A DNA stretch of 64,000 nucleotides from Ranitomeya imitator (taxonomy: Eukaryota): the NCBI RefSeq assembly GCF_032444005.1, contig NC_091285.1, positions 674,870,001 to 674,934,000 of the forward strand, written 5' to 3'. The notes beneath the pieces are model-generated. The model was not told where the DNA came from, searched no databases, and was given only the letters and a program-made list of their open reading frames with translations. Below are positions 6,156-58,699 of this stretch, piece after piece. The stretch's first letter is position 1. The number at the start of each line of letters is the position of its first letter. Made by a program: the position numbers and the translations under genes.

Positions 6156-6369
6156 TGTCAGGGCGATGAGGAAAAACTCTTTTGGGAGAGTGGAGGGTAA
6201 TCTGGTGCTACTGCTGAGGGCTTCATAATGGCTCCCTGGTGTCACTGTGGAGTTTACACTGTAGACAATATTCGGGTCTCTCTGATGACACTGTTGATGG
6301 TACGCGATTGACAGTACTAGAGACCTCTGATGAGCCCTTACAGGGTGCCATATTTACTTTATTAAAGAC

Positions 6370-9175: not shown

Positions 9176-9235
9176 TTGTTGAATGGAACTTGGAATAGAT
9201 TAGTCCAGCGGCTAGGTATCAGCGAGGATGACCAA

Positions 9236-9612
9236 CTACCTTAAGAGGCCTAGGAAAGTAACATCTGAGGAACATTCTGGGTTAAATTGGTAACCTGACG
9301 TGTGCAATGACAAAGGGAGCTGGACACTGGTGAAGGCAGGTGCATGGTCCGGCCCTGGAGCCAGGACAGATGGGTAACAGTTTACACTATGGCAGATCAT
9401 TGGGTAGCCGGGTCTGATTTCAATCACGATCCTCCCGAGTCAGTGTGTCTACCCCATCTCGTGTGGACTTTCTCTACTTTCCGAAAACAACCCTTGTGGG
9501 GGTCTCTTTCTACTCGGCTCATGAAAGATTCCAGCTGAGAAGTCTTGTGGCCATTGGGAGATTCAGAGATGGACGACATCCGCTCATAGTTGAGATCCGG
9601 AATGTGATCCAA
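9236..9612 (-). mobile_element. Possible decayed L1-type endonuclease fragment
   Basis: Translation YPSVLAPGPDHAPAFTSVQLPL...YQFNPECSSD loosely resembles the L1 APE end motif (SDH.P...W.FN..L.D); broken frames. Confidence 0.3.
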
Positions 9613-11019
9613 CTATGGATTTACAGTTGTCCTACAAGACATGGGGTTAAGAATGAAGGATGGCGCCATTCATAATCCGGAAGCTTCCTCTGTGTTTACA
9701 CCCTGAGATGTTACATGAGACATCTGCTCCTGGACTTACGACATCAGGCAGCTGTGCACAACTGGGACTCGGAACCATCGGCAACATCTACAAACCCTAC
9801 TTTTTAGACCAGTCCCATGACAATAAGTTGATCAGAAAGTGTTTTCCGTTCTGAGACGTCAAGCGAGCAGCTGCAATCTGTAAGTAACACTAGCAGTAAG
9901 TGTTCAATTTCCCTGCAGCGCCTCCACAGGAGAAATGAAGCATTGCACTCTGTCCATTCACATCAATAAGCCGTCTTTATACTCCATCGTAGGACAGGTC
10001 CTCCAGAGAGGGACATGTACTCTATGTAATCTCACCCTACTTGTTCCTTTTTGTAGGGTTCATTCATTTTCGCAACCTGTTGACTTTCTTGGAGACCACC
10101 ATAGCTAAACTAAAAAAAAAATGCTCCAACCTAGGGGTGAAATATCCTACAGACTGGTCCTCTTTACAAATATTCAGGGGGAGATGGGATAAAATATGGG
10201 TGGATTGGCCAAATTTACAGACCCCCCCAACTAATTATGAAAAAAGTGGAAAGTGCCTTTTAAAAATGTACGATTTTGTTTGTGAAGGCGTGTGTCCGAT
10301 TATTATTGTCTCTTTGGGAATTTCCGTGACTCATAGAGAATTCTGCAGGGACTTATTGTTATCATTTAACTGGTGGAGCGATGGGTTAATCATTAACCAT
10401 ACCAAGGGGAAAATTTAAGGTCTGGACTCTGCAATGTTTTAACATGTGGAGGAATGTGTGCACCGACACCGCGCCTTAAATCATCCGTAAGAGCGACAGA
10501 TGGAGAACGGCAAACATTCCCTAACACGAGGGGGCGATGTTACAAAAAGTGACCACATTTATCACACCGTTTTCCATTATCGCAAAAGGCCCAAACTTGG
10601 TCAAGTGTGTCCATGGTCCTACAGGTAACGCTGGGACTGTATTACTACTGGTGCACACTGGTTCACAGTCTTGGGTGAGCAGGTAGAATACAAAAGTCCT
10701 ACTAGTACACAGTCCTGCCATCACTCACTTTGCCAGTCCTACCAGTTCACACCTTCCCAGTCTTACTGGTGCAGTCAGTCCTGTAACATTTTGACAGTGT
10801 GTCACCACCTCTTATAAGCTATTGATGGATAATTTCCTGTCCTACAAGTGGACCTTGACTGGTTCTTGGACCTTAACGGTCCAACGGGTGAAAATCAAAA
10901 TAGGACTTGTGGCCCAAAATCAGGACTTTATGGCTGATCTGTAACTGGGGAGATAGTAGAGAGCAGGACGCTCGGATTGACTGCATCATTCTGACTGACT
11001 GTCTCTCATCTCTTCTCAG

Positions 11020-11158
11020 GTGCCTCACAAGGAGGCAATAACTGGAAATATTGTCAGGACTGTGGAAGATTACTCAAGGATGCAAATATGGATGATCAAT
11101 TTTACCAAACTCTGGTTCAAAATGCCAAATATGAAGAATGTCCTCACAATATTGTCAG
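11020..11158 (+). CDS. cxcl16: cxcl16-like exon: N-terminal chemokine domain with CX2C motif (139 nt, phase 1 to 2)
   Basis: tcatctcttctcag|GT GCC...ATT GTC AG|gtaaga; open frame with Cys codons at 11052, 11061 and 11139. Confidence 0.82.
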
Positions 11159-13902
11159 GTAAGACAGATGTCTATGTATACAGAGGCTCCATCCTCAGGT
11201 AGAAATCCTCCGATGTGATGGCTCATCCTATATACAGTTGTGTGAAAAAGTGTTTGCCACCTTCCTGATTTCCTATTTTGCATGTTTGTCACACTTAAAT
11301 GTTTCAGATCACCAAACCGATTTTAAATATTAGAAAAGATGACACAAGTAACCACAAACTGCAATTTTTAAATAAAGGTCTTTATTATACAGGGGAAAAG
11401 AAATCCAAACCTACAGGGCCCGGTGTGAAAAAGTGATTGCCCCCTTCCTCTTAAAACATAAATTAACTAGTTTATCACATCGTTTTGAATCTGAGTTCAA
11501 ATTCTCTAGCCACGCCCAGGCCTGATTACTGCCACATCAGTTCTCAATCAAGAAATCGCTTAAATAGAACCTGCATGACAAAGTGATGTAGACCAAAAGA
11601 TCCTCAAAAGCTAGACATCATGCCGCGATCCAAAGAATTTATGGAACAAATGAGAAACAAAGTAATTGAGATCTATCAGTCTGGAAAAAGTTATAAAGCC
11701 ATTTCTCAAGCTTTGGGACTCCAGGAAACCACAGTGAGAGCCAGTATCCACAAATGGTGAATACATGAAACAGTCCAAACCTTCCCAGGAGTGGCCGGCC
11801 AATAAAAATAACCCCAAGAGCGCAGCATCTACTCCTCCAAGAGGTCACAAAAGACCCCACAGCAACATCCAAAGAACTGAATGCCTCACTTGCTTTGGTT
11901 AAGGTCAGCGTTCATGAATCCGCCATAAGAAAGAGACTGGACAAAAATGGCCTGCATGGCAGAGTCCAAGACGAAAACCACTTTTGAGCAATAACCACAT
12001 AAAGTCTCATCTCTATTTTTCCAGAAAACATCTTGATGGTCCCCAAGACTTTTGGGAGAATACTTTGTGGACTCACAAGACAAAAGTCTTATATCTGGTG
12101 TAGAAGTAACAGCATCTCAGAAATGAACATCATACCAACAGTAAAATATGGTGGTGGTAGTGTGATGGTCTGGGACTATTTTGCTGCTTTAGGACCTGGA
12201 CGACTTGCTGTGGTAAATGGAACCATGAATTCTGCTGTCTGCCAAAGAATCCTGAAGAAGAATGTCCGGCCATCTGTTTGTGACCTCAACCTCAAGTGCA
12301 CTTGGGTTATGCAACAGGACAATGATCCAAAACACACCAGCAAGTCCACCTCTGAATGGCTTAAGAAAAACAAAATTAAGACTTTGGAGTGGCCTAGTCA
12401 AAGTCCTAAATCCGATTTGAGATGCTGGGACATGACCTTTAAAAAGGCAGTTCATGCTCGGAAACCCTCCAATGTGGCTGTATTATGACAATTCTGCAAA
12501 GATGAGTGGTCAAAATTCCTCCAGAGCGTTGTAAAAGACTCATTGCCAGTTATTGCAAATGCTTAATTGCAGTTGTTGCTACTAAGGGTGGCAGTTATTA
12601 GGTTTAGGGGGCAAACAATTTTTGACGCAGGACCCTACAGGTTTGGATCTCTTTTTCTCTTTATAATAAAGACCTTCAATTATAAACTGCATTTTGTGAT
12701 TACTTCTGTTTCTTTGTCTAATATTTACATTTGGTGATCTGAAACAGTGCGACAAACATGCAAAAGAATAGGAAATCAGGAAGGGGAAAACACTTTATCA
12801 CACAACTGTATTCTGCCGGTGAACAGGGGACACCTACAGTCTGTGCCTCTTTCTTTGCTCTCTCTGTCTTCTTAATACTTTCTTGTCTATTTTTCTCACA
12901 TTTCAGATTTGTGCTACCGAGAGGAATCTTCTGTGGAGAAAAAGGAGAATCATGGGTGGAAAAAGTCAAGGGGTGCATTAATCAGGGTGAGTTTCTCCAT
13001 CTGCTCCAGCAATAAGACTATGGATGTAGAGGAGCAAATCATCACTGATGGGCACCGATCGTCTCTGAGGAAGTTCTATCACCTCCACGAATATAATTAC
13101 TTGTCAATCTAGAACATTATTACTTTTTCAGTTGTGTGATCATAGATCGATAAATGTTTGGTCTCTTCTAATGATCTTGTTGTCCTCTTTGCAGGTAGAC
13201 AACCTTGTCTAAACCAGCCAGAAACTCCCAAAGGCTCAAACGAGAAGTTGCCCTCAACCACATCTACAGCCAAAATAGCTCTGTTTCCAGGACAGTCTAC
13301 ACAGACTTGGAAAGGAGGAACAGAGATGTCTTCAGAATCTGCTAATAAAAATCCCAGTACCTTGCAGAAAACCTTAGAGACCATCATGGGTGCCACCACC
13401 GCAGCACAAGACTTGGGTCAGAATAATGACTCACAACATGGTACGGAGTGGACAATGATAGGGGGTGGAGTGAGGGAAAAGTATTGTCTCCCTGAGGGTT
13501 GATAGGTGGTGCTTCTTCAGGTTTCTCAAAACTGGGCCAATATTATTTTTTTATCTTTGTCTAAATCCAATGCTCCATGTTCATATTTCATCCTCTTCCC
13601 TCACAGGTATTAAACAATCAGCAGAAAAAGAAGACGAGAAGAGCAAAAAGAAACAAATGATGACAGCCATTATCTTATTGATATTGATAGTCTTGGCGAT
13701 GACAGCCATCGTGACATACTTTGTTTGCCGGAAGAGGAAGGTTACCAAATGTACAACCACATACAACACCGATATAAACATGGTGTACCAACAACCACTC
13801 GTAGAAGAGCAGGAACCAGGAGGTGAAATCATTCCGACGTCATGTGTCCTAGAAGAGAAGAGCGGTCTACAAGACAATATTGCTTATGAGGTCCAGAACT
13901 GA
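11020..13902 (+). CDS. cxcl16: CXCL16-like transmembrane chemokine (5' partial): join 11020-11158, 12907-12986, 13195-13440, 13607-13902
   Basis: Four AG/GT exons splice in frame: GASQGGNNWKYCQDCGRLLKDANMDDQFYQTLVQNAKYEECPHNIV-RFVLPRGIFCGEKGESWVEKVKGCINQ-GRQPCLNQPET...(S/T-rich stalk)...-GIKQ...AIILLILIVLAMTAIVTYFVC-RKRK...YEVQN*. The exon-3 motif RFxLxxxxxCGxxxxxWVxxxxxC matches CXCL16, and the gene lies tail-to-tail with arrb2 as in the human ARRB2-MED11-CXCL16 region. Confidence 0.82.
11235..12808 (+). mobile_element. Tc1/mariner DNA transposon, full length but decayed, in a cxcl16 intron
   Basis: TA|CAGTTGTGTGAAAAAGTGTTTG...CACTTTATCACACAACTG|TA, with ~200-bp TIRs and TA TSD. The transposase starts MPRSKEF at 11620 and retains KYGGGSVMVW, QQDNDPKH and WPSQSP motifs, with frameshifts and stops. 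Confidence 0.93.
12907..12986 (+). CDS. cxcl16: cxcl16-like exon: C-terminal chemokine domain (80 nt)
   Basis: ttttcag|A TTT GTG CTA...AAT CAG G|gtgagt; contains the C...WV chemokine signature. Confidence 0.85.
13195..13440 (+). CDS. cxcl16: cxcl16-like exon: mucin-like stalk (246 nt)
   Basis: ctctttgcag|GT AGA CAA CCT TGT...CAT G|gtacgg; Ser/Thr-rich. Confidence 0.8.
13607..13902 (+). CDS. cxcl16: cxcl16-like exon: juxtamembrane, TM helix and cytoplasmic tail to stop
   Basis: cttccctcacag|GT ATT AAA; hydrophobic segment of about 21 aa followed by RKRK stop-transfer; TGA at 13900-13902. Confidence 0.8.
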
Positions 13903-13959
13903 ATGCGCTGACTTTGTCTTTTTCAAAGTTGCTTACGTTTGTGGTTTTTGCAGTTTTTT

Positions 13960-15560
13960 TTTTTCTAAGGGAACTTGGCAACCTTGACCAGAACTGTGAG
14001 ATTTCTACAGCAATCCAGATATTCAATTAAAGAAGCAGTTTCTGCCTCTACCACAGAAGGAAGTCTCAGCAAACGAAACTTGAGCTTCATTATTTTCAGC
14101 TAATCGAGTGCAACTTTATCTTTGGGGTCAATTAGGAGGAGTTGTGGACACAGAATCTTGTCCAGCACTTTGAGGGTTCTACAGCAGTCCAGATATTCAG
14201 TGAAGAAGCTCTTTCTGCCTCTACCACAGGAGGGATTCTCAGCAAACAAACCTTGAGCTCCATTTCTCTTGGGCAGTCAATTACACCTCATTTCAAAAAG
14301 GTAGTTGTGAAGGATGATTGACAACAAAACTTGACTTGTTGAGGTTTCCATAGCAGTGTAAATAATCAATGAAGCACTTTCTGCCTCTACCACAGAAGGA
14401 AGTCTCAGCAAACAAAACTTGAACTCCATTACTTCCGGCCAATCGATTCCAATTCTATTCACATGAAAGTTAGGAAGGATGATGGACACCAAATCTTGAC
14501 CAGCACTCTGAGGCTTCTACAGCAGTCCGGATGTTCAGTGAACAAGGTCTTACTGCCTCTCCTACAGCAGGAAGTCTCAGCAAACAAAACTTGAGCACTA
14601 ATTGATTCCGGCCCGTCAATTGCGACTCTATTCATAGGATAAGAATGGAACAAATAAGAGGGGTGGTAGACAACTAGTCTTGACCAGGACTTTGAAGCCA
14701 TCCAGATATTCCATATAGAAGCTCTTTCAGCCTCTACCTTAGCAGGAAATCTCAGCAAACCGAACTTGAGCTCTTCATTACCTCCAACCAATCAATTATA
14801 ACTCTATTCATAGGGAAGACAGGGCTGGGAAAAAAGAGGAGCAGTAGACACCAAATCTTACCAGCACTTTGACGTTGATACAATAGTCCAGATATTCAAT
14901 ATATAAGCTCTCACAGCCTCTACCACAGTAGGAAGTCTCAGTAAACCAAACTTGAGCTCAATTTCTTCTGGCCTTTCATTTGCAACTCTATTCATGGGTC
15001 AGTTAGGAGGGGATGTGGAAATAAAATCTTGCCCAACACCATAAGGCCACATGAATAACGCTGTCTAGATACTCAATGAAGCTATGCTCTTTCCCCCTAC
15101 CATAGCAGCAAGTCTCAGCACATTTTTTAAGTAAACCAAACGTGAGCTCGAGTTCTTCCAGCCAACAATCTGTAGCTGCATTCATAGGACGGGTCAGGGA
15201 TGAGGAGTTGTAGACACAAAACCATGACAAGCATTTTGCAATGCAAGGTTTCTACAGAAGCTATATGAAGAGCTCTTGAGTCCAGACACCCGGTGAAGCA
15301 GCTCTCCCTGTCTATATCATGGTGGGAAATGTCTACAAGACCTAACCAAAACCAAACCCGAGCACAATGACGTCTGGTCAGTTATTTTCAACTTTATTCA
15401 TAGGAATCTTAGGAGGGGTTGTAAAACAAAATTTTTATGGTTAGTGAGGTTTCTACATCAGCCACATGATCAGCTCTTCATCCAGACACCCATGGAAGCA
15501 GCTCTCTCTCTGCCTCTACCACAGCCAGAACTCTCAGCACGATCTCAAGAAAACCAAAAG
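13960..15560. repeat. Old diverged ~175-bp tandem array just after the cxcl16 stop
   Basis: TCTCAGCAAAC anchors at ~14065, 14238, 14403, 14576, 14750, 14936, 15113, with related units to ~15540. Confidence 0.85.
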
Positions 15561-22640: not shown

Positions 22641-22712
22641 TACGTCGATCAACAGGTCTCTTGACACAGGAAAAGCCTGTCGATCACCTCTAGCAGAGCT
22701 GGGAACTTTTAA

Positions 22713-32700: not shown

Positions 32701-32797
32701 CTAGCAGTAGGCTTCGTCGTCGTCCTTGTCGTCTTTCATTCCTTTCAGCCTCAGCCGGGCAAAGTCTTCAAATACGATGTCGTCGTCCTGAGGGAAA
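32701..32797 (-). CDS. arrb2: arrb2 exon 15 coding part ([31 protein letters not shown])
   Basis: ctgtccag acceptor; AP2-binding [10 protein letters not shown] motif; TAG at 32701-32703. Confidence 0.96.
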
Positions 32798-35700
32798 CTG
32801 GACAGAAGAGCAGACAATCAGCAGCGGGCAGAAGGCATCGCTCTAGGGTACAGAACAGTGACTGGCGGTGTTACAGAACCCCCCACCAAGAATGTTATAC
32901 AGTATATGTATGTATAATAGTTTCCATGTGAAATGCATCAGTCCATAGGCTGCGCCCCTGGACAAGATATTCTCTTTCTGACCTCCCCCCCACCTTTGTA
33001 ATTCCCACAGTAAATATCGGCAGGCTCCGGCCCCCTGCGGCTATTGTAATGTAGGTCTGGCCTGCTGTGTTCCTATTGGCCTGCCCTGTGTATCTGTGTT
33101 ATATATTCTGTGTGCTGTAAATAAAGGGTGTTCTTAGACTGGAAATACGTGGGGTAGCAGTCAGCTTTTATATGCTCTCATGTAATCAAGAAATTTCAGC
33201 CAGCGTCCTTCATTCAGAATCTACATTAAAAGCAGAGTGGACTTCCTGAAACACGGGGTGGTACTGAAAGAGGTACCCCAGCTTGGTAGACCCCGTTACA
33301 GGCGGTATTTCCCCCCGAAAATAACGTGACTAAGTGGAGGCGGAGGTAGAGAAGGGTTCACTTACTTGGTTTCAAATTCTATGAGATTTGTGTCCACCGG
33401 GACGTCTGTCTGCGGGAACTCTGGGAAGCAGAAGAAACAAAGACATGGACCCATGATCAGCTCTGACAATCCAGCAAGACTCGTTATTGAGCAAGAAAAC
33501 CAGTCCGGAGCCCCCCAGGACAGAAAAACAGGAGGAAAATCTGACCAGGATGGTCCATGCAACACGTTTACAAATGTCTCCCCACCTGTAGGTGCTGGAG
33601 TACGGAGGTAATACCATGCTCTCCCCACAAAATGGCAGCAGACACAAGTAGCAGCTCAGGGCAGAGCGGCACCGGTCAGTGGAGAGTGAGAAGGGGGAGT
33701 GAACGACACTCACCGGACAGTGGAGAGTGAGCGACACTCACCGGACAGTGGGAAGCGAGAGACACTCACCGGACAGTCGAAAGAGGGTAGGGGGAGCGAG
33801 CGACACTCACCGGACAGTGGGAGGGGGGAGCGAGCGACACTCACCGGACAGTAGACAGTGGGAGGGGGGAGCGAGTGACACTCACCAGACAGTGGGAGGG
33901 GGGAGCGAGCGACACTCACCAGACAGTGGGAGGGGGGGAGCGAGCGACACTCACTGGAAAGTGGAGAGTGGGTAGGGGGAGCGAGCGACACTCTCTGGAC
34001 AGTGGGTGGGGGGGGAGGCAAACAACACTCACCAGACATGGGTGGGCTGGCCGAAGTTTGTCCTCCACCACACTGTCTGAACAGGGTTTACTACAGCCCA
34101 CCCTCCGGATGGGGAGAGAGTGTGTTTGGCACCAGCAAACACAATCACCGGACAGGGATGGCGGGGGATTTGGGAGCTTACAAACTCACCGGACAGGGGC
34201 CGCGTCGCCGTCTCAGAGGGCTTTGGATGCATCAGGACAAAAGGCAGCTCCACCGCGACATCACTGGGGGGAGACATGACGGCGATATCAGCTCTGCGCT
34301 CACCACACACCCCACCTACAATGGCCGCAGTGGCCGAGCACTCACCCTCCACGGGACACCACCAGCTTCACCTTCACCTTGTAGGAGACCAGTATTCCCA
34401 GCACCTCCTTACTGGAGCCTTCCTTCACTCTGGAAGGAAACCAGGCAGAGGTTACAAGCCTCGGTCGCATTACGACCCCCCCACCCAGCCCGGTCACCAT
34501 GCAGCGGCCGCTCACATGGTACTTGACGCCAGGTTGGTGTCCTCGTGCTTCAGCTTCCCGTCCAGGGCCAGGCCCCTCTTCTCCCGGTTGCTGGACAGCA
34601 GGGGGGTGAGAGTGTAAACTTTACAGAACGTGGAGCTGGGGGCGACCTGGTCACTGGAAAGAAATGAGAACAGTGGTCAGAGAGCACAGGGGGCCGACGA
34701 GCAGACACGGCCGGGTACGGGGGGGCCGTACTCACTCCTGCTCTATCTGAGCCACTGGGCACTTGTACTGGGCTGTGCTGAAGAGACAGATGTCAGCGTA
34801 CTGCCGGACTGGAGGGGAAACACACAAGGGTTAATAAGACCACCGCTGCCATAGTGGATACTGCCGAGACCCCCACTGAGCACCAGAATGGGGAGTGTCA
34901 ATGGTCGGCGGGGTTCTCCTACAACGGCAGACTGCGCCACGTACCGGATACCTTCACCCTCTTCACCGTCTTGCTGGTGTTGTTGGTTACGTGCACGTTC
35001 ACATTGATGGGCTCCCCGTGGTAATACAGCTGGAAAGGCACACAAGCGTTAGTGGGGGGGGGAACGGGAAATTAAACATCCCATAATGCACCGGTGCTTG
35101 CCCCTCGGTACCTCCTTATCGAGCGAGGCCTCCAGGTGCAGGGAGCGGTCGGACATCAGGAAATGCCTGGTGGTCTCTGCTACGGGCTGCGGTCCGGCCT
35201 TCTCGGGGGCGAACTGCACCTTCCTGATGACCAGACGCACGGAGTTCCTAAAGAGGAGACACAGAACGACTTGTCTGATGGCGGCAACACGACCGCTTCT
35301 GCTATTCACCGCCGCGCTTTACACAGCTGAGCTCGTTACAATGGGTCCGCTCAGAAAATTCATTTCACACATTGTGTCCTCCGCCAAAGGATTGTAAAAG
35401 TAGAAAAATATACATTTCCCCTGAAACTGGGGCTTGGGTGTATCAGCCCCAGTTACAGGGGAGACGCCGCCTCCTGGGTGGATGGTAGAGCGGTCTGCTA
35501 TGCCACCCCGTAAAGCACAGCCAGTGTAGATCGCTCCCGACCCCCCACCCTCCCCGTCTAAGCTCCCATCCTCCCCGCACGCTTATTTTTACCTTACCCC
35601 CCCCCCCCCCCCCCGACGTCCTTCATGGAAGATGCCAGGAGGAAACAATAAAAGTGATCTCCCCTGCACAGGCCGTGCCGGCAACCAGATACGTGGGCGT

Positions 35701-38700
35701 ACGACCTTCCCAGAACCGCTGACTCCACGCAGGGTCTCACCGTCCCACCCACCGCTCGTTACCTCCCTCTATAATTAAACATTTGGTGTTTTCCGTCTGG
35801 ATACAAGGCTGACTTTAGGGGGTTTTTAATTAAAGGCAAATCTCCCGGCCCCCACAATTCACCGAAGTGCTGAGAACGGGTACGAGCGGGGCTGCACCCG
35901 GGAAGGACCCCTACACAGTTATACCGGTCATGTCCCTTTAAGAGGGTTCATATAAACTTCCTCTAAATGACTGGACACCGGCGGCGGGGAGGGAAGCAGC
36001 CAGTGTTGGCGGCAGCAATGTCTACCCGTCTTCCTGTGCGACTGCGAGAGCGCGTGTCTGTGGCTAACCACTGCGGGGCGGCGCTAATGCTGTGGCCACA
36101 CAACCGCATCAATGGGGGGTCCTCAGTACCCGCTGCCGTCCTCACCGGCGACCCATTATCACCTGCAACATCTCACTTCATTTTAAAGACCCCCAAGCTA
36201 TCAGAAACTATCAGGACACCTAGACAGACACTTCTTTCCAGGGAGGTGCAATTCTATGAATTAAAAATAATTTAAAAAAAAAAAAAAAAGGTCAGAAAGA
36301 GGCTTCCTCCAGGTAAAATGCCACCTTCCCACGGCTACGTGCAGGACACCCCCGCCTTCCCACGGCCACGTACAGGACCCCCCCCACCTTCCCACGGCCA
36401 CGTACAGGACCCCCCCCCCCCTTCCCACGGCCACGTACACGACCCCCCCTTCCCACGGCCACGTACAGGACCCCCCCATGGCCACGTACAGGACCCCCCC
36501 ACCTTCCCATGGCCACGTACAGGACCCCCCGCCTTCCCACGGCCACGTACAGGACCCCCCCACGGCCACGTACAGGACCCCCCCCTTCCCACGGCCACGT
36601 ACAGGACTTCCCACGGCCACGTACAGGACTTCCCACGGCCACGTACAGGACCCCCCACGGCCACGTACAGGACCCCCCACGGCCACGTACAGGACCCCCC
36701 ACGGCCACGTACAGGACCCCCCACCTTCCCACGGCCACGACCCCCCCTTCCCACGGCCACGTACAGGACCCCCCGCCTTCCCACGGCCACGTACAGGACC
36801 CCCCCCCTTCCCACGGCCACGTACACGACCCCCCCTTCCCACGGCCACGTACAGGACCCCCCCATGGCCACGTACAGGACCCCCCCACCTTCCCATGGCC
36901 ACGTACAGGACCCCCCGCCTTCCCACGGCCACGTACAGGACCCCCCCATGGCCACGTACAGGACCCCCCGCCTTCCCATGGCCACGTACAGGACCCCCCC
37001 ACGGCCACGTACAGGACCCCCCCTTCCCACGGCCACGTACAGGACTTCCCACGGCCACGTACAGGACCTCCCACGGCCACGTACAGGACCCCCCACCTTC
37101 CCACGGCCACGTACAGGACTTCCCACGGCCACGTACAGGACTTCCCACGGCCACGTACAGGACCCCCCACGGCCACGTACAGGACCCCCCACGGCCACGT
37201 ACAGGACCCCTCACGGCCACGTACAGGACCCCCCACCTTCCCACGGCCACGACCCCCCCACTGCCACGTACAGGACCCCCCCACGGCCACGTACAGGACC
37301 CCCCCACGGCCACGTACAGGACCCCCCCACGGCCACGTACAGGACCCCCCACCTTCCCACGGCCACGTACAGGACCCCCCACCTTCCCACGGCCACGTAC
37401 AGGACCCCCCACGGCTACATGCTGGGCCCCCACTTTCCCACGTACACCGTTCTGTAGTTGCTTGGGCGCCGGCTGTAAATATGGCAGCAGTTTCCGGGCC
37501 CCACAGGACAGAGCCTATAGGGAAACACGAGCTCTCCCCAGACACGGGTGGCAGCGCTCAGTCTGCGGGGGGCGCCGCTCGCAGCGATCACAAATAACCC
37601 AGTAATTACCCTACAGATATAACCAGTAAGGAAAATGTCAGCACGTGCGTCCCTGAACGACAAATCCCTACACAGCCTGTCACGCCCAATGGAAGAAGCA
37701 CTGGCGGCCATATTGGTTGCCAGGTCCGGAGGGTTGCTGGCCGGCAGATGGGCGCACACGGGTCTGGTGGGACAGAGGATGAACACTAAAGTGGGGAAAT
37801 GTGACGTTTATCATCGTCCTCATAGGCTGAGATATCAGGTGTAGAAACCACAGGCCCAACGCTGCACTACTGCGCCGCTCAGTAAGTGTCTCCCGCCATC
37901 TGCATGCCTCAGTGGTGCAGCCTCAGTGGTGCAGCCTCAGTGGTGCAGCCTCAGTGGTGCAGCCTCAGTGGTGCAGCCTCGGGCTCCGGGCCTCCAATGT
38001 CAGTCATCTCTCTGCAGAGAAACCAGATATTAACCCCTTCATGACCCAGCCTATTTTGACCTTAATGACCTGGCCATTTTTTGCAATTCTGACCACTGTC
38101 CCTTTATCAGGTAATAATTCGGAAACGCTTCAACGGATCCTAGCGATTCGGAGATTGTTTTTTCGTGACATATTGGGCTTCATGTTAGTGGTAAATTTAG
38201 GTCAATAATTTTTGCGTTCATTTGTAAAAAAAATAAATAATCGGAGATTTGGTGAAAAATTTAGAAAATTTCGCAATTTTCAAATTTTGAATTTTTATTC
38301 TGTTAAACCAGAGAGTTATGTGACACAAGATAGTTAATAAATAACATTTCCCACATGTTTACTTTACATCAGCACAATTTTGGAAACAAATTTTTTTTTT
38401 GGTTAGGAAGTTATAAGGATTAAAAGTTGACCAGCGATTTCTAATTTTTACAACAAAATTTACCAAACCATTTTTTTTTTTTAGGGACCACCTCATATTT
38501 GAAGTCAGTTTGAAGGGTCTATATGGCTGAAAATACCCAAAAGTGACCCCATTCTAAAAACTGCACCCCTCCAGGTGCTCAAAACCACATTTAGGCTATG
38601 TGCACACATTGCAGATTCTCTGCGGATCCGCAGCGTTTATTGCGGTGCAGAAACACTGCAGATCCGCAATTGATTTACAGTACAATGTAAATCAATGAGA

Positions 38701-41700
38701 AAAAAAAAAAAATGCTGTGCACATTTTGCGGAAAATCCGCTGCGGAAACGCTGCAGTTTAAAAGAAGTAGCATGTCACTTTTTTGTGAATCTGCAGCATT
38801 CCATTATAGAAAACCGAAGAGGTAAAAACCGCAGCAAAAACGCACAAAAAAAAAAAAACACGACAAATCCGCAGGTGCGTTTTCTGCCAGGAGAGGCAGA
38901 ATCCGCACCAGAAACTCCCAAGCCTAATCCGCAACGTGTGCACATAGCCTTGTGAAAAAAAACAACTTGTTGCTAAGGCTAAAAGGAGAAAGTGGACCCC
39001 GAAAGTTGTTGTACAATTTGTCCCGAGTACACTGGTACCCCATATGTGGGGGAGAACCACTGTTTGGGCGCACGTCGGGGCTCAGAAGGGAAGGAGCGCC
39101 GTTTGACTTTTTGAACGCAAGATTGGCTGGAATCAATGGTGGCGCCATGTAGCGTTTGGAGACCCCTGATGTGCCTACACAGTGGAAACCCCCAAATTCT
39201 ATCTCCAACCCTGACCCCAACACAATCCTACCCTAACCCCAACCGTAAACATAATCCAAACCCGAAAGGAAAAAAAAAAATGGAAAAAAAATATTTTTTG
39301 CAATGAAAAGCGTCTCTTAGCGTGTGACAGCTGCCAGTCATAAAAATCCGCTATAAAAGTAAATCAAACCCCCCCTAGTTAGGGAAAAATAATAAAATAC
39401 ATACATTTTTTGCGTTACCACATTCCAAGAGCTATAATTTTTCCATATTTTGGTCCACAGAGTCATGTGAGGTCTTGTTTTTTGCGGGACGAGTTGACGT
39501 TTTTATTGGTAACATTTTTGGGCACGTGACATTTTTTGATCGCTTTTTATTCCGATTTTTGGGAGACAAAGAACAAAAACCAGCTACCGTATATACTTGA
39601 GTATAAGCCGACCCGAGTATAAGCCGACCCCCCTAATTTTGCCACAAAAAAACTGGGAAAACTTATTGACTCGAGTATAAGCCTAGGGTGGGAAATGCAG
39701 CAGCTACCGGGGAATTTCAAAAATAAAAATAGATGCTCCATACCATTCATTATTTCCCCATAGCTGTGCCATATAGTGCTCTGCACCGTTCATTATTGCC
39801 CCATAGCTGTGCCATATAGTGCTCTGCACCGTTCATTATTGTCCCATAGCTGTGCCATATAGTGCTCTGCACCGTTCATTATTGTCCCATAGCTGTGCCC
39901 CATATAGTGCTCTGCACCGTTCATTATTGCCCCATAGCTGTGCCCCATATAGTGCTCTGCACCGTTCATTATTGCCCCACAGATGCTCCATATAAATCTG
40001 TGCCATTGCTGCTGCTGCTGCTGCAATAATAATAAAAAAAAAAATAAAAAAAAAGCCATACTCACCTCTCTTGCTTGCAGCTCCCGGCGTCTCGTCCCGG
40101 CGTCTCTGCGCACTGACTGATCAGGCAGAGGGCGCCGCGCACACTATATGCGTCATCGCGCCCTCTGACCTGCACAGTCAGTGCAAGAGGACGCGAAGAC
40201 GGAGCGGCGCCGGGAAGATGGAGCGGCGCCCGGCGTGTGGAACGCAGACAGGTAAATATGACATACTTACCTAGTCCCAGCGATCCTGGGGCTTCCCCTG
40301 CCGTCCCACGATCTTCTGTGCTGCAGCCTCTTCCTCTATCAGCGGTCACCCTATGGGAGGTGGAGCCGCCTATTCATTTCTCTAATGAGCGGTCCCACGT
40401 GACTGCTGAAAAGGGGAAGAAGCTGCAGCACCCGGAGACCGTGGGACGGCAGGGACAGCGCCAGGATCGCTGGGACTAGGTAAGTATACCTCAGCGCCCT
40501 CACCCGCCGACCCTGCCGCCCACCGTGACTCGAGTATAAGCCGAGAGGGGCACTTTCAGCCCAAAAATTTGGGCTGAAAATCTCGGCTTATGCTCGAGTA
40601 TATACGGTATTCATGAATTTCTTGGGGGGGGGAGGAGGGGTGTTTATACCATTCCGCGTTTGGTAAAAGTGATAAAGCAGTTTTATTCTTCGGGTCACTA
40701 CGATTACAGCGATATACGATAAAAACTATTTTATAGAAAAAATAATTACTGTATATACACCGAGGTTTTCAGCCTTTTTTTTTTTTTATTAAGGCTAAAA
40801 GTGCCCCTCTCGGCTTATACTCCAGGCATTGTCCCAGGGGTCGGCGGGGGAGCGGCAGCTGTCACATCATACTCACCTGCTCCCGGCACAGTCTCTGCAT
40901 TTCTATTGTCCCGGCGCTGGCAGCTCTTCCTGTATTCAGCGGTCACGTGGTATCGCTCATTAAAGTAATGAGTATGGACGCGACTCCACTCCCATAGAGA
41001 TGGAGCGCATATTATTTACTTTAATGAGTGGTACCATGTGACCGCTGAACACAAGAACATGCTGACAGCGCACGCCAGTGACTATCGGAGAAGCAGGGAC
41101 TTGCAGAGAAAGCGCCAGGAGGGTGAGTATGACGGGGGAGGGTGAGCCATGTGAAATTCACCTGTCCCCGTTCCACCGCTGGCCTCTGGCTGTGACGTTC
41201 CAACAGAGGGCACGATGACATGGTTAGTGCGTGCCCTCTGCCTGAACAGTCACCAGAGACCTGAAGATACAGCGGCGCACGGCGGTGGAAAAGGTGATCA
41301 CCACAAGTGCCGGGGGCCTGAGCCAGGGGCGACTCCAGCATCTGGTACGCAGATACGAGAGGGGAGTATTTTGTATGGAGCATATTATGGGGCCCATCAT
41401 AAACTTTATGGAGCATTATATGGGGCTCATGATTCAATATGGATATTCAAACACACTTAACCTACTGATGTCTCCATTAATTTTGCTTTTATTGGTGCCT
41501 ATTTTTACTTTTGACATTTACCAGTAGCTGCTGCATTTCCCACCCTAGACTTATACTCGAGTCATTAAGTTTTCCCAGTTTTGTGTGGCAAAATTAGGGG
41601 TCTCGGCATATACTCGAGTATATATGGTATTTTTGCATCGCTATATTCTGAGAGTTATTTTTTCGCTGATGACGCTCTATGGTGGCATTTTTTTTTTTGC

Positions 41701-42751
41701 GGGACAAGATGACGTTTTCAGCAGTACCATGTTTATCTATATCCGTCTTTTTGATCGCGTGTTATTCCACTTTTTGTTTGGCGGTATGACGATAAAGCGT
41801 TGTTTTTTGCCTTGCTTTTTATTTATTTTTTTTGCGGTGTTCACTGAAGGGGTCAACTAGTGGGACAGTTTTATAGGTCGGGTCGTTACGGATGCGGCGA
41901 TACTAAATGTGTACTTTTATTGTTTTGTTTTTCTATTTACATAAAGAAATGTATTTATTGGAATTTTTTTTTCTCCTTTAAAAATAATTTTTTAAAATTC
42001 CTAAATGAACAGTTTAATATTTTTACATTGTCCCAAAATGGGACATCACTATATAGTGTCAGATCGCTGATCTGACACTTTGCACAGCACTTTATAGATC
42101 AGCGATCAGGCAGTGTAGGAGGCGTCTCAGCACCTGCTCTAGGCAGGCACGGAGAAAGCCACCTCCCTGCAGGACCAAGAAGGACACCGCAGCCATCTTG
42201 GATCCAGGGGCCTGCAGGTAGGAGACCCTCGGAATAACACGATCACATCGCGCTGTTCTGAGGGTCTCAGGGAAGCACGCAGGGAGCCCCCTCCCTGTGC
42301 GATGCTTCCCTATGCCACCGGAACGCTGCGAACATGTTTGATTGCAGTGTCCCGGGGGTTAAAGTGTTGGGATCGGTCCTTGACAACTCCTGGCTCATAG
42401 TGCCAGCTGTGATAATCAGCTGACACCTGGCCACGCTCCCCCTACTAGCCAGTCCATGGAAATGAAGTCCCAGGTCACCTAGACGGGATAGTACGTCCGA
42501 TGGCAGAAAGGGGTTAAGAAGGGGTTTACACATTTACTGCGCAGTTGTCGGGCGCCCCAGTGGGCATTACCGGGGCACAGACCATCGTCAGTGTGCAATC
42601 AGCGAGGTGACTGCATAGGACCGGCCCAGTCTCACCTTTTATGCATCTTCTCCTCCACAGATTTGGCGCAGAAGGCACGGATTTCATAATCGACACCGCA
42701 GGCCTGAAAAAGACAACAAGACGTGCAAGGGTTAACCTAATCAATCATTGA

Positions 42752-42837
<86 letters not shown>

Positions 42838-45800
42838 TTATTTTTTTTTCTTTCTTTCCTTTTTCAGAATAAAATTTATAATATTTTAATAAAATATAAA
42901 TAATGATAGTAATATAAAATATTTACTAGTAATCATAAAATAAGGAATATTAGTATAATAATAAATAATTTCAAAAATATTAAGTAAAATGTGCTATTTA
43001 GGATTCTATTTTTTCCTAGGGGTTGCGCTGTCAGTGACGTCTGCCATGACACTTGGGACCCCCATTATGTGCCGGACCCTGAATTGATGTAGATGTCACT
43101 AACGCCCCCTGGGGGTCAGGATGTAGGGGCCCGGTCACTCACCTTCCCAGTGTCCTCCGGTCCCGGCTGCAGAGTCACTGAACACGGCAAATTCTGTGGA
43201 ATCTGAGAGAGAAAAAAAAAGGAACATGACCAAAAAAGCAAAAGAAGCCCCCTGGGTAGATGAGGAGAAGAGGGTGAGGACTGACTGTGAAGTAGAAGGG
43301 GTGCGCCTGCTCCCCCAGCTTCTTGATCAGCCGCTCCTGCAGTCGGGTCAGGGGCTTCTTCTCCTCGGGTAGTGGGGGATACGCCTGGAACGTGGAGATG
43401 AACAGATCCTTCCGGAAGGACAGGCCCAAGACGTCGAGATCCTCCCGGCCATAGCGGAAGGCGCAGGTCAGGGTGACGTAGACTGCAGAGGGAGAGAAGA
43501 AGCGATGCAGGGAGAAGACCCCGACAGGCTGCAGCCCCCAACACCAGCTGATCAGGAAGTGACAGACTAACGCTCAAACTTCCCCTTTAAGGTCAGATAA
43601 GAGGAACAACTGGGGAAGTAAAGGGCCGATGGAGCAAGAGCCGCCGACACATGACCGGGGGAGGGGAGCAGTACCTTTCCGGTCCTTCAGATAATCCGTA
43701 TCCACCAGAACCACGCCGTCTACAAAACAAGACACAGGCAGGCGATGAGCGGACAGAGCCAGAGGTGTAGTGTCACACACAGGAGCGCAGCTCTGGGGTA
43801 TAATACAGGATGTAACTCAGGATCAGTAATGCATGTACACAGTGACTGCACCAGCAGAATAGTGAGTGCAGCTCTGGGGTATAATACAGGATGTAACTCA
43901 GGATCAGTAATGTAATGTATGTACACAGTGATTGCACCAGCAGAATAGTGAGTGCAGCTCTGGGGTATAATACAGGATGTAACTCAGGATCAGTAATGTA
44001 ATGTACACAGTGACTGCACCAGCAGAATAGTGAGTGCAGCTCTGGGGTATAATACAGGAGGTAACTCAGGATCAGTAATGTAATATATGTACACAGTGAC
44101 TGCACCAGCAGAATAGTGAGTGCAGCTCTGGAGTATAATACAGGAGGTAACTCAGGATCAGTAATGTAATGTATGTACACAGTGACTGCACCAGCAGAAT
44201 AGTGAGTGCAGCTCTGGGGTATAATACAGGATGTAACTCAGGATCAGTAATGTAATGTACACAGTGACTGCACCAGCAGAATAGTGAGTGCAGCTCTGGA
44301 GTATAATACAGGATGTAACTCAGGATCAGTAATGTAATGTACACAGTGACTGCACCAGCAGAATAGTGAGTGCAGCTCTGGGGTATAATACAGGATGTAA
44401 CTCAGGATCAGTAATGTAATGTATGTACACAGTGACTGCACCAGCAGAATAGTGAGTGCAGCTCTGGAGTATAATACAGGATGTAACTCAGGATCAGTAA
44501 TGTAATGTATGTACACAGTGACTGCACCAGCAGAATAGTGAGTGCAGCTCTGGGGTATAATACAGGATGTAACTCAGGATCAGTAATGTATGTACACAGT
44601 GACTGCACCAGCAGAATAGTGAGTGCAGCTCTGGGGTATAATACAGGATGTAACTCAGGATCAGTAATGTAATGTATGTACTCAGTGACTGCACCAGCAG
44701 AATAGTGAGTGCAGCTCTGGAGTATAATACAGGATGTAACTCAGGACCAGTAATGTAATGTATGTACACAGTGACTGCACCAGCAGAATAGTGAGTGCAG
44801 CTCTGGGGTATAATACAGGATGTAACTCAGGATCAGTAATGTAATGTATGTACACAGTGACTGCACCAGCAGAATAGTGAGTGCAGCTCTGGAGGATAAT
44901 ACAGGGGGTAACTCAGGATCAGTAATGTAATGTATGCACACAGTGACTGCACCAGCAGAATAGTGAGTGCAGCTCTGGGGTATAATACAGGGCAGGCTGT
45001 AACTCAGGATCAGTAATCTAATGTATGTACACAGTGACTGCACCAGCAGAATAGTGAGTGCAGCTCTGGAGTATAATACAGGATATAACTCAGGATCAGT
45101 AATGTAATGTATGTACACAGTAACCACCAGCAGAATAGTGAGTGCAGCTCTGGGGTATAATACAGGATGTAACTCAGGATCAGTAATGTAATGTATGTAC
45201 ACAGTGACTGCACCAGCAGAATAGTGAGTGCAGCTCTGGGGTATAATACAGGATCAGTAATGTAATGTATGTACACAGTGACTGCACCAGCAGAATAGTG
45301 AGTGCAGCTCTGGAGTATAATACAGGAGGTAACTCAGGATCAGTAATGTAATGTATGTACACAGTGACTGCTCCGGCAGAATAGTGAGTGCAGCTCTGGA
45401 GTATAATACAGGAGGTAACTCAGGATCAGTAATGTAATGTATGTACACAGTGACTGCACCAGTGGAATAGTGAGTGCAGCTCTGGAGTATTATACAGGAT
45501 GTAACTCAGGATCAGTAATGTAATGTATGTACACAGTGACTGCACCAGCAGAATAGTGAGTGCAGCTCTGGAGTATAATACAGGGGGTAACTCAGGATCA
45601 GTAATGTAATGTATGTACACAGTGACTGCACCAGCGGAATAGTGAGTGCAGCTCTGGAGTATTATACAGGATGTAACTCAGGATCAGTAATGTAATGTAT
45701 GTACACAGTGACTGCACCAGCAGAATAGTGAGTGCAGCTCTGGAGTATAATACAGGGGGTAACTCAGGATCAGTAATGTAATGTATGTACACAGTGACTG

Positions 45801-48800
45801 CACCAGCAGAATAGTGAGTGCAGCTCTGGAGTATAATACAGGGGGTAACTCAGGATCAGTAATGTAATGTATGTACACAGTGACTGCACCAGCAGAATAG
45901 TGAGTGCAGCTCTGGAGTATAATACAGGGGGTAACTCAGGATCAGTAATGTAATGTATGTACACAGTGACTGCAGAGAAATAGCAATTGGATCCTATTAA
46001 AACTTAACCTTTAATATATAATAGGTAATATAAAACCTGAAGTCATGCAAAAAGTGCAAAAAGATGCACCACTAAAAAAGAAAAGAAAAAGGGAAGGACA
46101 AACCTATTGAGGTGTACCCTATAAACCATACACAGAAGGAAGGGACATATACAGCAAACAAATATAAAAAATAAAAAATGACAGTACTATTTCCCTGCTA
46201 GAAACATATATACACAGGGGGATGATGTAAGTTAGTGCAGTACAAATATATCTATTAGAGATGCACAAGGTATAGCCCACACTGTTATATAAGGAGGCTT
46301 GGTACCAATTGTGCTTGTATCTAATTATAATTATACACAGTGACTGCACCAGCAGAATAGTGAGTGCAGCTCTGGAGTATAATACAGGGTGTAACTCAGG
46401 ATCAGTAATGTAATGTATGTACACAGTGACTGCACCAGCAGAATAGTGAGTGCAGCTCTGGGGTATAATACAGGATGTAACTCAGGATCAGTAATGTAAT
46501 GTATGTACACAGTGACTGCACCAGCAGAATAGTGAGTGCAGCTCTGGGGTATAATACAGGATGTAACTCAGGATCAGTAATGTAATGTATGTACACAGTG
46601 ACTGCACCAGCAGAATAGTGAGTGCAGCTCTGGGGTATAATGCATGATGTAACTCAGGATCAGTAATGTAATGTATGTACACAGTGACTGCACTAGCAGA
46701 ATAGTGAGTGCAGCTCTGGGGTATAATACAGGATCAGTAATGTATGTACACAGTGACTGCACCAGCAGAATAGTGAGTGCAGCTCTGGGGTATAATACTG
46801 GATATAACTCAGGATCAGTAATGTAATGTATGTACACAGTGACTGCATCAGCAGAATAGTGAGTGCAGCTCTGGGGTATAATACTGGATATAACTCAGGA
46901 TCAGTAATGTAATGTATGTACACAGTGACTGCACCAGCAGAATAGTGAGTGCAGCTCTGGAGTATAATACAGGATCAGTAATGTAATGTACACAGTGACT
47001 GCACCAGCAGAATAGTGAGTGCAGCTCTGGGGTATAATACAGGATCAGTAATGTATGTACACAGTGACTGCACCAGCAGAATAGTGAGTGCAGCTCTAGA
47101 GTATAATACAGGATCAGTAATGTAATGTATGTACACAGTGACTGCACCAGCAGAATAGTGAGTGCAGCTCTGGGGTATAATACATGATATATATAAAAGG
47201 TTAGGCAGCTTTCATCAGTCTCCACTTATTGGCTTTTATTTCATCACAGAAGGGCAGAATACAAAGATATAAAACCCCAATGTTGCAACTAGTGGCATAA
47301 ACATGTTCTCACCGACAGGATCCACACGATCAAGGTGATCCACAAAATCCCTCTTGCCCAGGTACACGGTCAGCTGCAAGAAGCGGGAGAACATTAGATG
47401 AATAAGCTGACTCCCTGCCAGTTGTCGCTCCCCCTGCCGTCCCCCCAGTCAGTACCACGTCCCCCCCCCCCCCCCAGTCAGTACCACGTCCCCCCCCCAG
47501 TCAGTACCACGTCCCCCCCCCAGTCAGTACCACGTCCCCCCCCCAGTCAGTACCACGTCCCCCCCCAGTCAGTACCACGTCCCCCCCCCCAGTCAGTACC
47601 ACGTCCCCCCCCCCCCAGTCAGTACCACGTCCCCCCCCCCCAGTCAGTACCACGTCCCCCCCCAGTCAGTACCACGTCCCCCCCCCAGTCAGTACCACGT
47701 CCCGCAGCTGCTTCTTGTAGACGGTGGGGCCCCGGGGCACGATGCAGCGGATCCTCTCCAGATCGGACAGGTCCATGCCTCCTTATCAGTCGCCTGCAGA
47801 CCTCTGCCTCCTCCTCAGCTGTTTACCTCGCCCTGTACCCGGGCCCACCCTGGGGAGCGCAGCACCGCAGGCCTCCGGAGATAAGGCTGCCTCTGCCTCC
47901 TCCTCAGCTGTTTACCTCGGCCCACCCTGGGGACCGCCATGGTGACTGCAACATTACCGGCTAACCCTTTCCTCGCTGGACGGTCACCGTGGAGCACTCA
48001 CCTTACAATTCGGGCTGGATTTCTTAAAAACTCTGCAAAGAAAGAAAATAAATTCAGAATTCACATTTATGTTATAGAAACCACAGACATCTGACCACTT
48101 GGTGGCGAAGCGAATGTTTTACATAGGACTGCGCCTTTTGATAGCAGAAGAGCATCCCTGCACGTCCCTTTAACGAGAACACAGGTGTCCGCAGGGTCCT
48201 ACTGTCAGTCATCTATCGGTGGGGCCCATGAGATCCCGTCTGCCGGCTCCTTAGTTACAGGATCTCTGCTGCCTGTCAGTCACTGGATCCCCTGACAGAA
48301 AACTGCCACCGCTCGGACCCGTGAGACCGTGCGCAGCCCCACGTTACACCGTGACTGCAGCTTTGGATATGACTGGAGTAGAATATGTGGTGCAACTAGA
48401 GGAAGGCAGCGACGTGACCCTTCAGAACGGGCACACGGCGCCATGAGGCGCTTCCTTCCTGACCGCACAGAAAAGAGGAAACGTGGGCGCGACATGATGG
48501 AAAGGACGTCTTAGGCCTCACTATCGCCCATAGCAACTAGAGCCACTCTGTCACTGTCCACGACAACCAATCACAGCACAGCTTTCATGACCCCAGCTAC
48601 CCAAGTAAAATGAAAGCCGCTCTGCGATTGGTTGCTCTGAACGACATTAATATCAGGATAAGAAGCGAAAACCGCCTTTTGATTGGTCACAACAGAACTA
48701 GAAAAATAAATAAACCTTTCTAATTGCAACCAATAAGAACTCAGCTTTCATTTCTGTCAACTACGCAAGTAAAATGAAAGCTGATCCGTGATTGGCTGCT

Positions 48801-58588: not shown

Positions 58589-58699
58589 GGTCACGGATCC
58601 GCCGCCTCTGGAGGCCGCGCTGTGGGTTCTCTCTCCTCTGCTTCTCCTCCCCTGACGGTTACGCGCACGGTTTCAAACAAGGCGGAGTCCCGAGTACGT

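Follow-up and report, generated by a model that had tools for sequence, protein, structure and literature searches.

The names and classes of chemokines follow from how far apart the first two cysteines stand, in a segment that leads into the receptor-activating N-terminus. A preliminary description of a 64-kb stretch of Ranitomeya imitator DNA (the window) had reported a membrane-tethered chemokine gene in which two residues separate these cysteines (C-Q-D-C, a CX2C spacing), and had taken it for a CXCL16 orthologue. The locus raises the question of whether this spacing is genuine, to which chemokine family the gene belongs, and whether the spacing is confined to this genome.

Gene Structure and Transcription

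The gene and its surroundings contain the following features:

11020..11158, plus strand: exon 2; end of the signal peptide, mature N-terminus, Cys1-x-x-Cys2, N-loop, and Cys3 (AG/GT borders, translation, spliced RNA contigs)
11052..11063, plus strand: CX2C motif C-Q-D-C, codons TGT CAG GAC TGT (read directly; the same in the contigs of runs X1, X2, and X11)
11232..12811, strand not given: decayed Tc1/mariner-type transposon inside intron 2, outside the gene product
12907..12986, plus strand: exon 3; beta strands, Cys4, W-V motif, and Cys5 (translation, RNA junctions)
13195..13440, plus strand: exon 4; Cys6 (13206-13208) and Ser/Thr/Pro-rich stalk (translation, RNA junctions)
13607..13902, plus strand: coding part of exon 5; basic juxtamembrane stretch, transmembrane helix (13657-13728), cytoplasmic tail, and stop codon (13900-13902)
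13903..14407, plus strand: 3' untranslated region, minimum extent (unbroken continuation of RNA contigs)
32704..47364, minus strand: beta-arrestin gene whose C-terminus is arrb2-like, 18.8 kb downstream of the chemokine gene and convergent with it

Exons 2 to 5 are joined by one open frame, with AG ahead of each exon and GT after exons 2, 3, and 4, and the window sequence is free of N. The protein string given in the preliminary description for the spliced exons agrees with our translation, and its motif codons, its six cysteines, and its phase-1 and phase-2 introns were all recovered: the cysteine codons of the chemokine domain lie at 11052, 11061, 11139, 12932, 12974, and 13206 across exons 2 to 4, and the intron phases of the frog gene are 1, 2, 1, and 1. 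The stalk and transmembrane segment said to follow the domain are both present in exons 4 and 5. The stalk comprises 94 residues (30% serine, threonine, and proline) and reaches into exon 5. The transmembrane segment has 24 residues (the best 19-residue hydropathy window has a mean of 2.94) and is flanked by the basic stretches KKKQ and RKRK; the cytoplasmic tail has 57 residues, including one tyrosine that is invariant across nine frog proteins. The gene encodes a type-I membrane protein, in which a stalk carries the six-cysteine chemokine domain and a single transmembrane helix leads into a short tail.

Exon 1, which encodes the signal peptide, is known from an RNA contig as 154 nt 5' of exon 2, ending in ...FLILELIPQP/G. 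The ends of this exon (30 nt and 24 nt, taken from the RNA contig) were absent from the window when up to three mismatches were allowed. In relatives the gene spans 13.7-19.7 kb, which is compatible with intron 1 extending past the left edge of the window. A tblastn search with four relatives found no second chemokine copy within the window.

RNA contigs of runs X1, X2, X11, and X12 (studies P1, P5, and P6) join 11158 to 12907, 12986 to 13195, and 13440 to 13607, and all three junctions are present in these four runs from three studies. The X2 contig (1085 nt) spans exon 1 to exon 5; the X12 contig, which runs from part of exon 2 to exon 5, and the X11 contig, which corresponds to 11017-11154, both have 0 differences from the window. 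Exon 2 varies at two sites only, 11072 A>C and 11091 G>A (X1 and X2 contigs), both outside the CQDC codons. A sequencing error in these codons had been considered, and the contigs speak against it. The CX2C spacing is genuine, and transcripts carry it.

Assignment to CXCL16

We scanned the window protein against Pfam exon by exon and used its nearest relative in place of the whole spliced protein. Exon 2 by itself matched no Pfam model; exon 3 by itself matched positions 48-72 of PF20902, the CXCL16 model, with 15.8 bits (E 0.018), under the cutoff of 27 bits. The PF20902 scores of the relatives, in bits, are 31.8 for Dendrobates tinctorius (P0015), 61.7 for Ranitomeya variabilis (P0016), 39.0 for Bombina (P0027), 40.9 for Dendropsophus (P0026), 32.8 for Bufo (P0025), and 29.8 for Engystomops (P0023). 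Two of these PF20902-positive relatives carry the NCBI names CXCL16 or CXCL16-like.

The window domain is 75.6-79.5% identical to those of P0015 and P0016, with P0016 at 79.5%. The fold was modeled with AlphaFold2 on P0016:20-104, the nearest relative with the same CQDC and not the window's own protein; an exact-sequence look-up of P0016 returned no record. The model (pLDDT 79.8) has three strands and a C-terminal helix. All of its top 50 matches in the PDB are chemokines, and its five best matches in the AlphaFold DB Swiss-Prot set are the CXCL16 proteins of cow, pig, rat, mouse, and human (probability 1.00, TM by query 0.59-0.67). A sequence search of the PDB found no solved CXCL16 structure. 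The predicted fold of the nearest relative is thus that of a chemokine, nearest to CXCL16. The protein-language-model neighbours of the Bombina protein were likewise CXCL16 clusters (score 0.96).

Mammalian CXCL16 (SR-PSOX), the ligand of CXCR6, has in common with the frog gene the six-cysteine domain, the stalk, the single membrane-spanning helix, and a conserved tyrosine in a short tail, and both genes have a convergent arrestin neighbour. In contrast, mammalian CXCL16 has C-x-C where the frog gene has C-x-x-C, so that the window gene departs from the spacing that gives the family its name, and in structural alignments the sequence identity between the mammalian proteins and the frog model is about 16-27%. 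Dendrobatids also differ in having several copies.

The neighbour was recognized by arrestin motifs in minus-strand exons (Arrestin_N E 4e-4) and by beta-arrestin matches in the PDB (E 1e-27). The alignment of its C-terminal exon extends to the terminus of a beta-arrestin-2 chain; one N-domain exon scores slightly higher to beta-arrestin-1, so that the assignment to arrb2 is tentative. In human, MED11 lies between ARRB2 and CXCL16, and the mammalian neighbourhood also contains ZMYND15. A limited motif search of the window did not find MED11, an uninformative negative. Altered CXCL16 synteny in frogs has been reported in a preprint (bioRxiv 10.1101/2024.09.20.614078).

The PF20902 matches of the relatives, the predicted fold, the architecture of six-cysteine domain, stalk, transmembrane helix, and tail, and the convergent beta-arrestin neighbour support a CXCL16 identity. 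Very probably, then, the locus is an intact, transcribed member of the CXCL16 family that carries its six-cysteine domain on a stalk and has a CX2C spacing conserved in the sampled non-pipid frogs. The orthology proposed in the preliminary description stands as far as the family is concerned; because dendrobatids have several copies, the window gene is a co-orthologue.

Distribution of the CX2C Spacing in Frogs

The C-x-x-C spacing was found in ten further named frog species (nine hyloids, which represent seven families, and Bombina) and in the domains of 16 of 18 aligned relatives, usually in the form C-x-[D/E]-C; ranoid and pelobatoid frogs, salamanders, caecilians, lungfish, and sauropsids (non-mammalian amniotes) lie outside this sample. 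When the Bombina protein was used as a search query, it matched itself only. Among the sampled non-pipid frogs, CX2C is conserved in CXCL16; it is neither an error nor a private mutation. Given its presence in ten other species, what is new is an undescribed clade-wide trait and not a peculiarity of the window genome. A literature search on CX2C or CXXC spacing in chemokines, CXCL16, frogs, or amphibians found nothing relevant. As to whether the spacing had already been documented in amphibian CXCL16, no paper describing it was found, and the published Xenopus CXCL16 has CC (PMC3568907, PMC8811506). We regard CX2C as a frog-wide variant, so far undescribed, of a chemokine whose family, architecture, and likely role were already known.

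The cxcl16 genes of Xenopus (X. tropicalis; X. laevis L and S) belong to the same family and have the same architecture, and they share the QFGA and RDPP landmarks with Bombina. Their Cys2 is at +1 from Cys1, whereas it is at +3 in Ranitomeya and the other sampled frogs. Since the Xenopus protein is accepted as CXCL16 in spite of its CC, failure to conform to C-x-C also occurs in an accepted member of the family.

The distance from Cys1 to Cys3 is the same in Bombina (CX2C) and X. tropicalis (CC), with 27 residues between, which suggests that Cys2 was shifted by substitution and not by an indel. Judged by where the PF20902 matches start, Cys1 falls on profile position 12 and Cys2 on position 14 in four of the five frog proteins examined, a placement that implies the insertion of one residue; the match start of Bombina does not fit. 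Two residues do separate Cys1 and Cys2, but the "extra residue" of the preliminary description holds only as a description, and the comparison of Bombina with Xenopus points to substitution.

The chances appear evenly balanced that CX2C is ancestral and near-universal in frog CXCL16, held for about 200 million years, and a real fifth type of cysteine spacing. If so, CXCL16 would be the one chemokine orthologue group with Cys2 at +1 in Xenopus, +2 in mammals, and +3 in other frogs, with the chain length unchanged; the N-terminal geometry would be tolerant or would have co-evolved with CXCR6, and motif-based classification would be undermined.

Alternative Explanations

The window gene might be a recent dendrobatid duplicate, one among several, that no longer fills the CXCL16/CXCR6 role and serves instead, for example, as a decoy, as a scavenger receptor only, or as the ligand of another receptor. 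The odd spacing would then mark relaxed or redirected selection and not a working CXCR6 ligand. Ranitomeya does have multiple copies (among them LOC143774321, and LOC143774322 with three domains); some lack Cys1, or both Cys1 and Cys3, and one is frameshifted. The dendrobatid copies share only 70-80% identity in their chemokine domains, against 89% between exon 5 and P0003. However, distant frogs, Bombina among them, have genes that look single-copy and retain C-x-x-C with all six cysteines, so that the spacing is far older than the dendrobatid duplications, and the window copy has an intact frame, splicing, expression, and the arrestin neighbour. We consider departure from the CXCL16 role unlikely. 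The window copy was not resolved as the orthologue of any single dendrobatid copy.

It is considerably less probable that the gene is a different transmembrane chemokine, either CX3CL1-like or a frog-specific, CC-derived gene with a CXCL16-like architecture. CX3CL1 (fractalkine) is likewise tethered to the membrane on a mucin-like stalk, and its Cys1-Cys2 spacing is wider than that of CXC; CX2C is intermediate between CXC and CX3C. A profile built from the frog proteins has a weak PDB match to CCL7 (E 0.04), and CXCL16 has been reported to group with CC-type chemokines (PMC10792014). However, the relatives match PF20902 and not merely the general IL8 family, CXCL16 proteins take the first five places among the Swiss-Prot structural matches, and fractalkine comes 41st and 43rd in the PDB list. 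CX3CL1 thus differs from the frog gene in Pfam family and in structural nearest neighbour, and it has three intervening residues and four domain cysteines, whereas the frog gene has two and six. The neighbouring gene is an arrestin, in contrast to the CCL17/CCL22 neighbourhood in which human CX3CL1 is located.

That CQDC is an assembly or sequencing error, or the gene an unexpressed pseudogene, has nothing in its favor (the only gap is the position of exon 1 outside the window) and is already refuted, because RNA contigs reproduce exon 2 and the junctions (X11 exactly over exon 2, X1 and X2 with 11072 and 11091 as the sole differences), the frame stays open up to the stop in exon 5, and the same motif occurs in other species.

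Cysteine Pairing and Proposed Function

Returning to the CXCL16 assignment, cysteines have been lost in pairs among the aligned relatives: Cys1 and Cys3 in the Ranitomeya paralogue P0003, and Cys5 and Cys6, which are lost only together, in Anomaloglossus and E. coqui. Cys2 and Cys4 are retained in all of them. The joint loss in P0003 supports a Cys1-Cys3 pairing. Cys1 would then have kept its position and its disulfide with Cys3, while Cys2, the probable partner of Cys4, would have slid along the chain by substitution; Cys5 and Cys6 may form a third, family-specific disulfide. A zinc-binding or redox role for the CxxC was also considered. We rejected it, since the motif lies in the fold of a secreted chemokine and each of its two cysteines has a presumed partner cysteine. 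Zinc-ribbon-like PDB matches to the CxxC, obtained when exon 2 was searched alone, are due to chance.

CXCL16 is characterized by CXCR6 binding and ADAM10 shedding. By analogy with the mammalian protein, the frog protein may act at the cell surface, where lymphocytes bearing CXCR6 would adhere to it, and, once shed, may attract cells in soluble form. Its spacing could affect CXCR6 recognition and signaling. Frogs are reported to have kept CXCR6 (bioRxiv 10.1101/2024.09.20.614078).

With CC, CXC, and CX2C, a single orthologue group has three spacings, and the two-residue spacing, kept across nine frog families, is a natural experiment on receptor docking and signaling. The frog genes correct the impression of recent surveys that CXCL16 is mammal-only (PMC10792014), and they point to frog gene models now labeled "uncharacterized". 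Amphibian immunology would gain a defined putative ligand for tissue-resident lymphocytes of the CXCR6 type. These gains are modest, as the family, architecture, and likely role were known beforehand.

The transposon inside intron 2 has inverted repeats at 11232-11445 and 12606-12811 and retains a DDE_3 remnant at 12033-12485 (E 0.0016). Many repeat-derived RNA contigs match this region.

Gene Structure and Transcription

Exons 2 to 5 of the chemokine gene lie on the forward strand, with intron phases 1, 2, 1, and 1. When joined, they read as a 252-residue open frame after a split first codon, and the translation agrees exactly with the spliced protein given in the preliminary description.

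11020-11158, + strand, exon 2 (AG before, GT after)
11052-11063, + strand, codons TGT CAG GAC TGT (CQDC), read in exon 2
12907-12986, + strand, exon 3 (AG before, GT after)
13195-13440, + strand, exon 4 (AG before, GT after)
13607-13902, + strand, exon 5, coding part (AG before)

The codons of the six domain cysteines are located at 11052, 11061, 11139, 12932, 12974, and 13206, and the window contains 0 N. Exon 1 was not found in the window. A contig of RNA run X2 contains 154 nt of it, the end of which translates as ...FLILELIPQP|G, the signal peptide end common to all relatives. The gene spans 13.7-19.7 kb in relatives, which fits an intron 1 that extends past the left edge of the window.

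Logan contigs of public RNA runs were placed on the locus. Contigs from X1 and X2 (study P1) are spliced 11158->12907, 12986->13195, and 13440->13607 with GT..AG ends, and a single X2 contig of 1085 nt spans the sequence from the 154 nt of exon 1 to exon 5. The identical three junctions were found in contigs from X11 (study P5) and X12 (study P6), which supplies the RNA-seq junction support that had been proposed as a check. An X11 contig matched 11017-11154 with 0 differences, as did an X12 contig from part of exon 2 to exon 5. The only exon 2 variants in RNA contigs were 11072 A>C and 11091 G>A, both outside the CQDC codons. Because spliced RNA contigs reproduce both the junctions and the CQDC codons, an assembly slip or a silent pseudogene can be ruled out as the origin of CQDC; the gene is transcribed and these codons are correctly assembled.

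Intron 2 contains a decayed Tc1/mariner-type transposon (11232-12811), which is plentiful in the RNA contigs of all runs, including those from other species.

11232-11445 and 12606-12811, terminal inverted repeats of roughly 200 bp
12033-12485, DDE_3 remnant ORF

Assignment to the CXCL16 Family

Downstream of the chemokine domain, the stalk and transmembrane segment reported earlier were recovered, followed by a tail.

94 residues after the domain, stalk, 30% Ser+Thr+Pro
13657-13728, hydrophobic segment of 24 residues, KKKQ before and RKRK after
57 residues after the hydrophobic segment, tail

In an exon-by-exon Pfam scan, exon 3 alone matched positions 48-72 of the CXCL16 model PF20902 at 15.8 bits, below the cutoff, and exon 2 alone gave only chance CxxC matches. 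Relatives were collected by one exhaustive exon 2 search and two word-indexed searches, which returned full-length proteins from poison frogs and allied species (Ranitomeya variabilis LOC143774321 and LOC143774322, R. imitator, Dendrobates tinctorius, Phyllobates terribilis, and Anomaloglossus), from other hyloids (Leptodactylus, Engystomops, Eleutherodactylus, Rhinoderma, Bufo gargarizans, and Dendropsophus), and from Bombina bombina. Two of them carry the NCBI names CXCL16 or CXCL16-like. At 75.6-79.5% identity, the window domain is close to the D. tinctorius protein and to the first domain of R. variabilis, but its identity with the Bombina domain is only 38%. These values mark the source as a dendrobatid frog.

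The CXCL16 identity proposed earlier is supported by the proteins of these relatives. Six of the nine scanned exceeded the 27-bit cutoff of PF20902 (29.8 to 61.7 bits). The AlphaFold2 model was made for the domain of the closest relative, with CQDC as in the window, in place of the window's own protein (residues 20-104 of P0016, R. variabilis LOC143774322 isoform X2). A chemokine fold was predicted, with three strands and a C-terminal helix (mean pLDDT 79.8). All of the 50 best PDB matches were chemokines, and the best five Swiss-Prot models were cow, pig, rat, mouse, and human CXCL16 (probability 1.00), with CCL19, CCL25, and CCL21 ranking behind. Language-model features of the Bombina protein pointed to CXCL16 clusters (score 0.96).

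Distribution and Origin of the CX2C Spacing

The CX2C spacing is real and transcribed, as the preliminary description held, but CX2C CXCL16 is neither a new kind of molecule nor a peculiarity of the window genome, the latter because C-x-x-C occupies identical columns in 16 of the 18 relatives' domains and in window exon 2. The remaining two are domains that lost Cys1.

Motifs from Cys1 to Cys2 in the domain alignment
CQDC: window; D. tinctorius; all three R. variabilis LOC143774322 domains; Engystomops; Dendropsophus; one transcript contig
CSEC: Anomaloglossus
CPEC: Leptodactylus; Bufo; one transcript contig
CQEC / CKEC: Eleutherodactylus coqui
CREC: Rhinoderma
CEHC: Bombina

Every aligned neobatrachian has an acidic residue, Asp or Glu, at the second position between the two cysteines. 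Strict conservation of the wider Cys1-Cys2 loop with this acidic residue suggests constraint rather than drift. Bombina, like Xenopus, lies outside the neobatrachian frogs. Among the frogs compared (hyloids, Bombina, and Xenopus), parsimony would thus make CX2C the earlier condition, with CC arising later in pipids. The published frog CXCL16 cases are from Xenopus only, and both are CC (PMC3568907, PMC8811506).

Residues were counted on the Bombina and X. tropicalis sequences. In both, four residues separate the shared QFGA from Cys1, six separate Cys1 from the shared RDPP, and 27 separate Cys1 from Cys3; however, Cys2 is at +3 in Bombina (CX2C) and at +1 in Xenopus (CC). Given the equal chain length, Cys2 moved by substitution, not by insertion or deletion. 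The extra residue postulated earlier therefore does not apply between these two frogs; it is implied relative to the mammal-based PF20902 model. In four of the five frog proteins checked, the match starts imply profile positions 12 and 14 for Cys1 and Cys2, respectively, so that one inserted residue would be needed between the frog cysteines, as judged from match coordinates and not a printed alignment. The match start in Bombina disagrees with a one-residue insertion.

Cysteine Losses and Paralogs

Natural cysteine losses among the aligned relatives served as a test of disulfide pairing. Phe replaces both Cys1 and Cys3 in R. variabilis LOC143774321 (P0003), Gly replaces Cys1 only in its R. 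imitator counterpart (P0001), whose stalk is in a shifted frame, and Cys5 and Cys6 are jointly absent in Anomaloglossus and E. coqui. Cys2 and Cys4 are kept in all aligned relatives. These losses fit the pairs Cys1-Cys3, Cys2-Cys4, and Cys5-Cys6; with Cys1 paired to Cys3, the leading cysteine in CX2C would be the true Cys1. The stalk, transmembrane helix, and tail of P0003 are ~89% identical to window exon 5, despite the loss of Cys1 and Cys3.

Dendrobatids have more than one CXCL16-type copy; a second was not found within the window. In the maximum likelihood tree, the window domain clusters with D. tinctorius and with the two Ranitomeya loci (support 82/90), and the tree does not resolve which dendrobatid copy matches it. 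The window gene, assigned earlier as a CXCL16 orthologue, is better described as a co-orthologue of CXCL16.

In the P0016 gene model, three complete chemokine domains of CXCL16 type follow one another, all carrying CQDC; at each join, a stalk segment runs into an exon 2-like start (GVSQG). Either the annotation read through a tandem triplication of the exon or gene, or the multi-domain chemokine is real.

Proposed Function and Earlier Descriptions

By analogy with mammalian CXCL16, reportedly described by Matloubian in 2000 and in later work, the frog protein displayed on the cell surface may act as an adhesion ligand for CXCR6-bearing lymphocytes, and juxtamembrane cleavage would release it as a soluble attractant. 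The tail would likewise bear a tyrosine motif; its Tyr is invariant in nine frog proteins. CXCR6 is retained in frogs, with a DRF motif, according to a preprint that does not discuss the ligand cysteines (bioRxiv 10.1101/2024.09.20.614078).

The preliminary description had made novelty depend on CX2C not being documented as the amphibian standard; in the literature searched, no description of this spacing in chemokines or CXCL16 of frogs or amphibians was found. CX2C is apparently an undescribed, real, and clade-wide variant of a known chemokine. The frog sequences are already public, mostly labelled "uncharacterized protein". A 2024 survey places CXCL16 among mammal-only chemokines (PMC10792014), whereas reports of Xenopus CXCL16 go back to 2012 and the frog proteins described above pass PF20902.

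Neighboring Sequence

The chemokine gene faces a convergently oriented beta-arrestin gene, whose short exons lie far apart.

32704 to at least 47364, - strand, beta-arrestin gene

The alignment of its final exon runs to the terminus of a beta-arrestin-2 chain, and its C-terminus ends in ...C-stop, which we take to be the arrb2 form; the N-domain exon scored marginally higher to beta-arrestin-1. The paralog is likely arrb2. MED11, looked for by motif matching only, was not found in the window; CXCL16 synteny is altered in frogs according to the same preprint (bioRxiv 10.1101/2024.09.20.614078).

Long minisatellite arrays make up a large share of the window; their periods range from 19 to 258 bp, and many have >90% unit identity.

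1-10000, 19000-31200, 33680-37410, 43780-47700, and 51900-64000, minisatellite arrays
52247-58523, 40-bp unit, 6.3 kb
59029-64000, 29-bp unit, 5 kb
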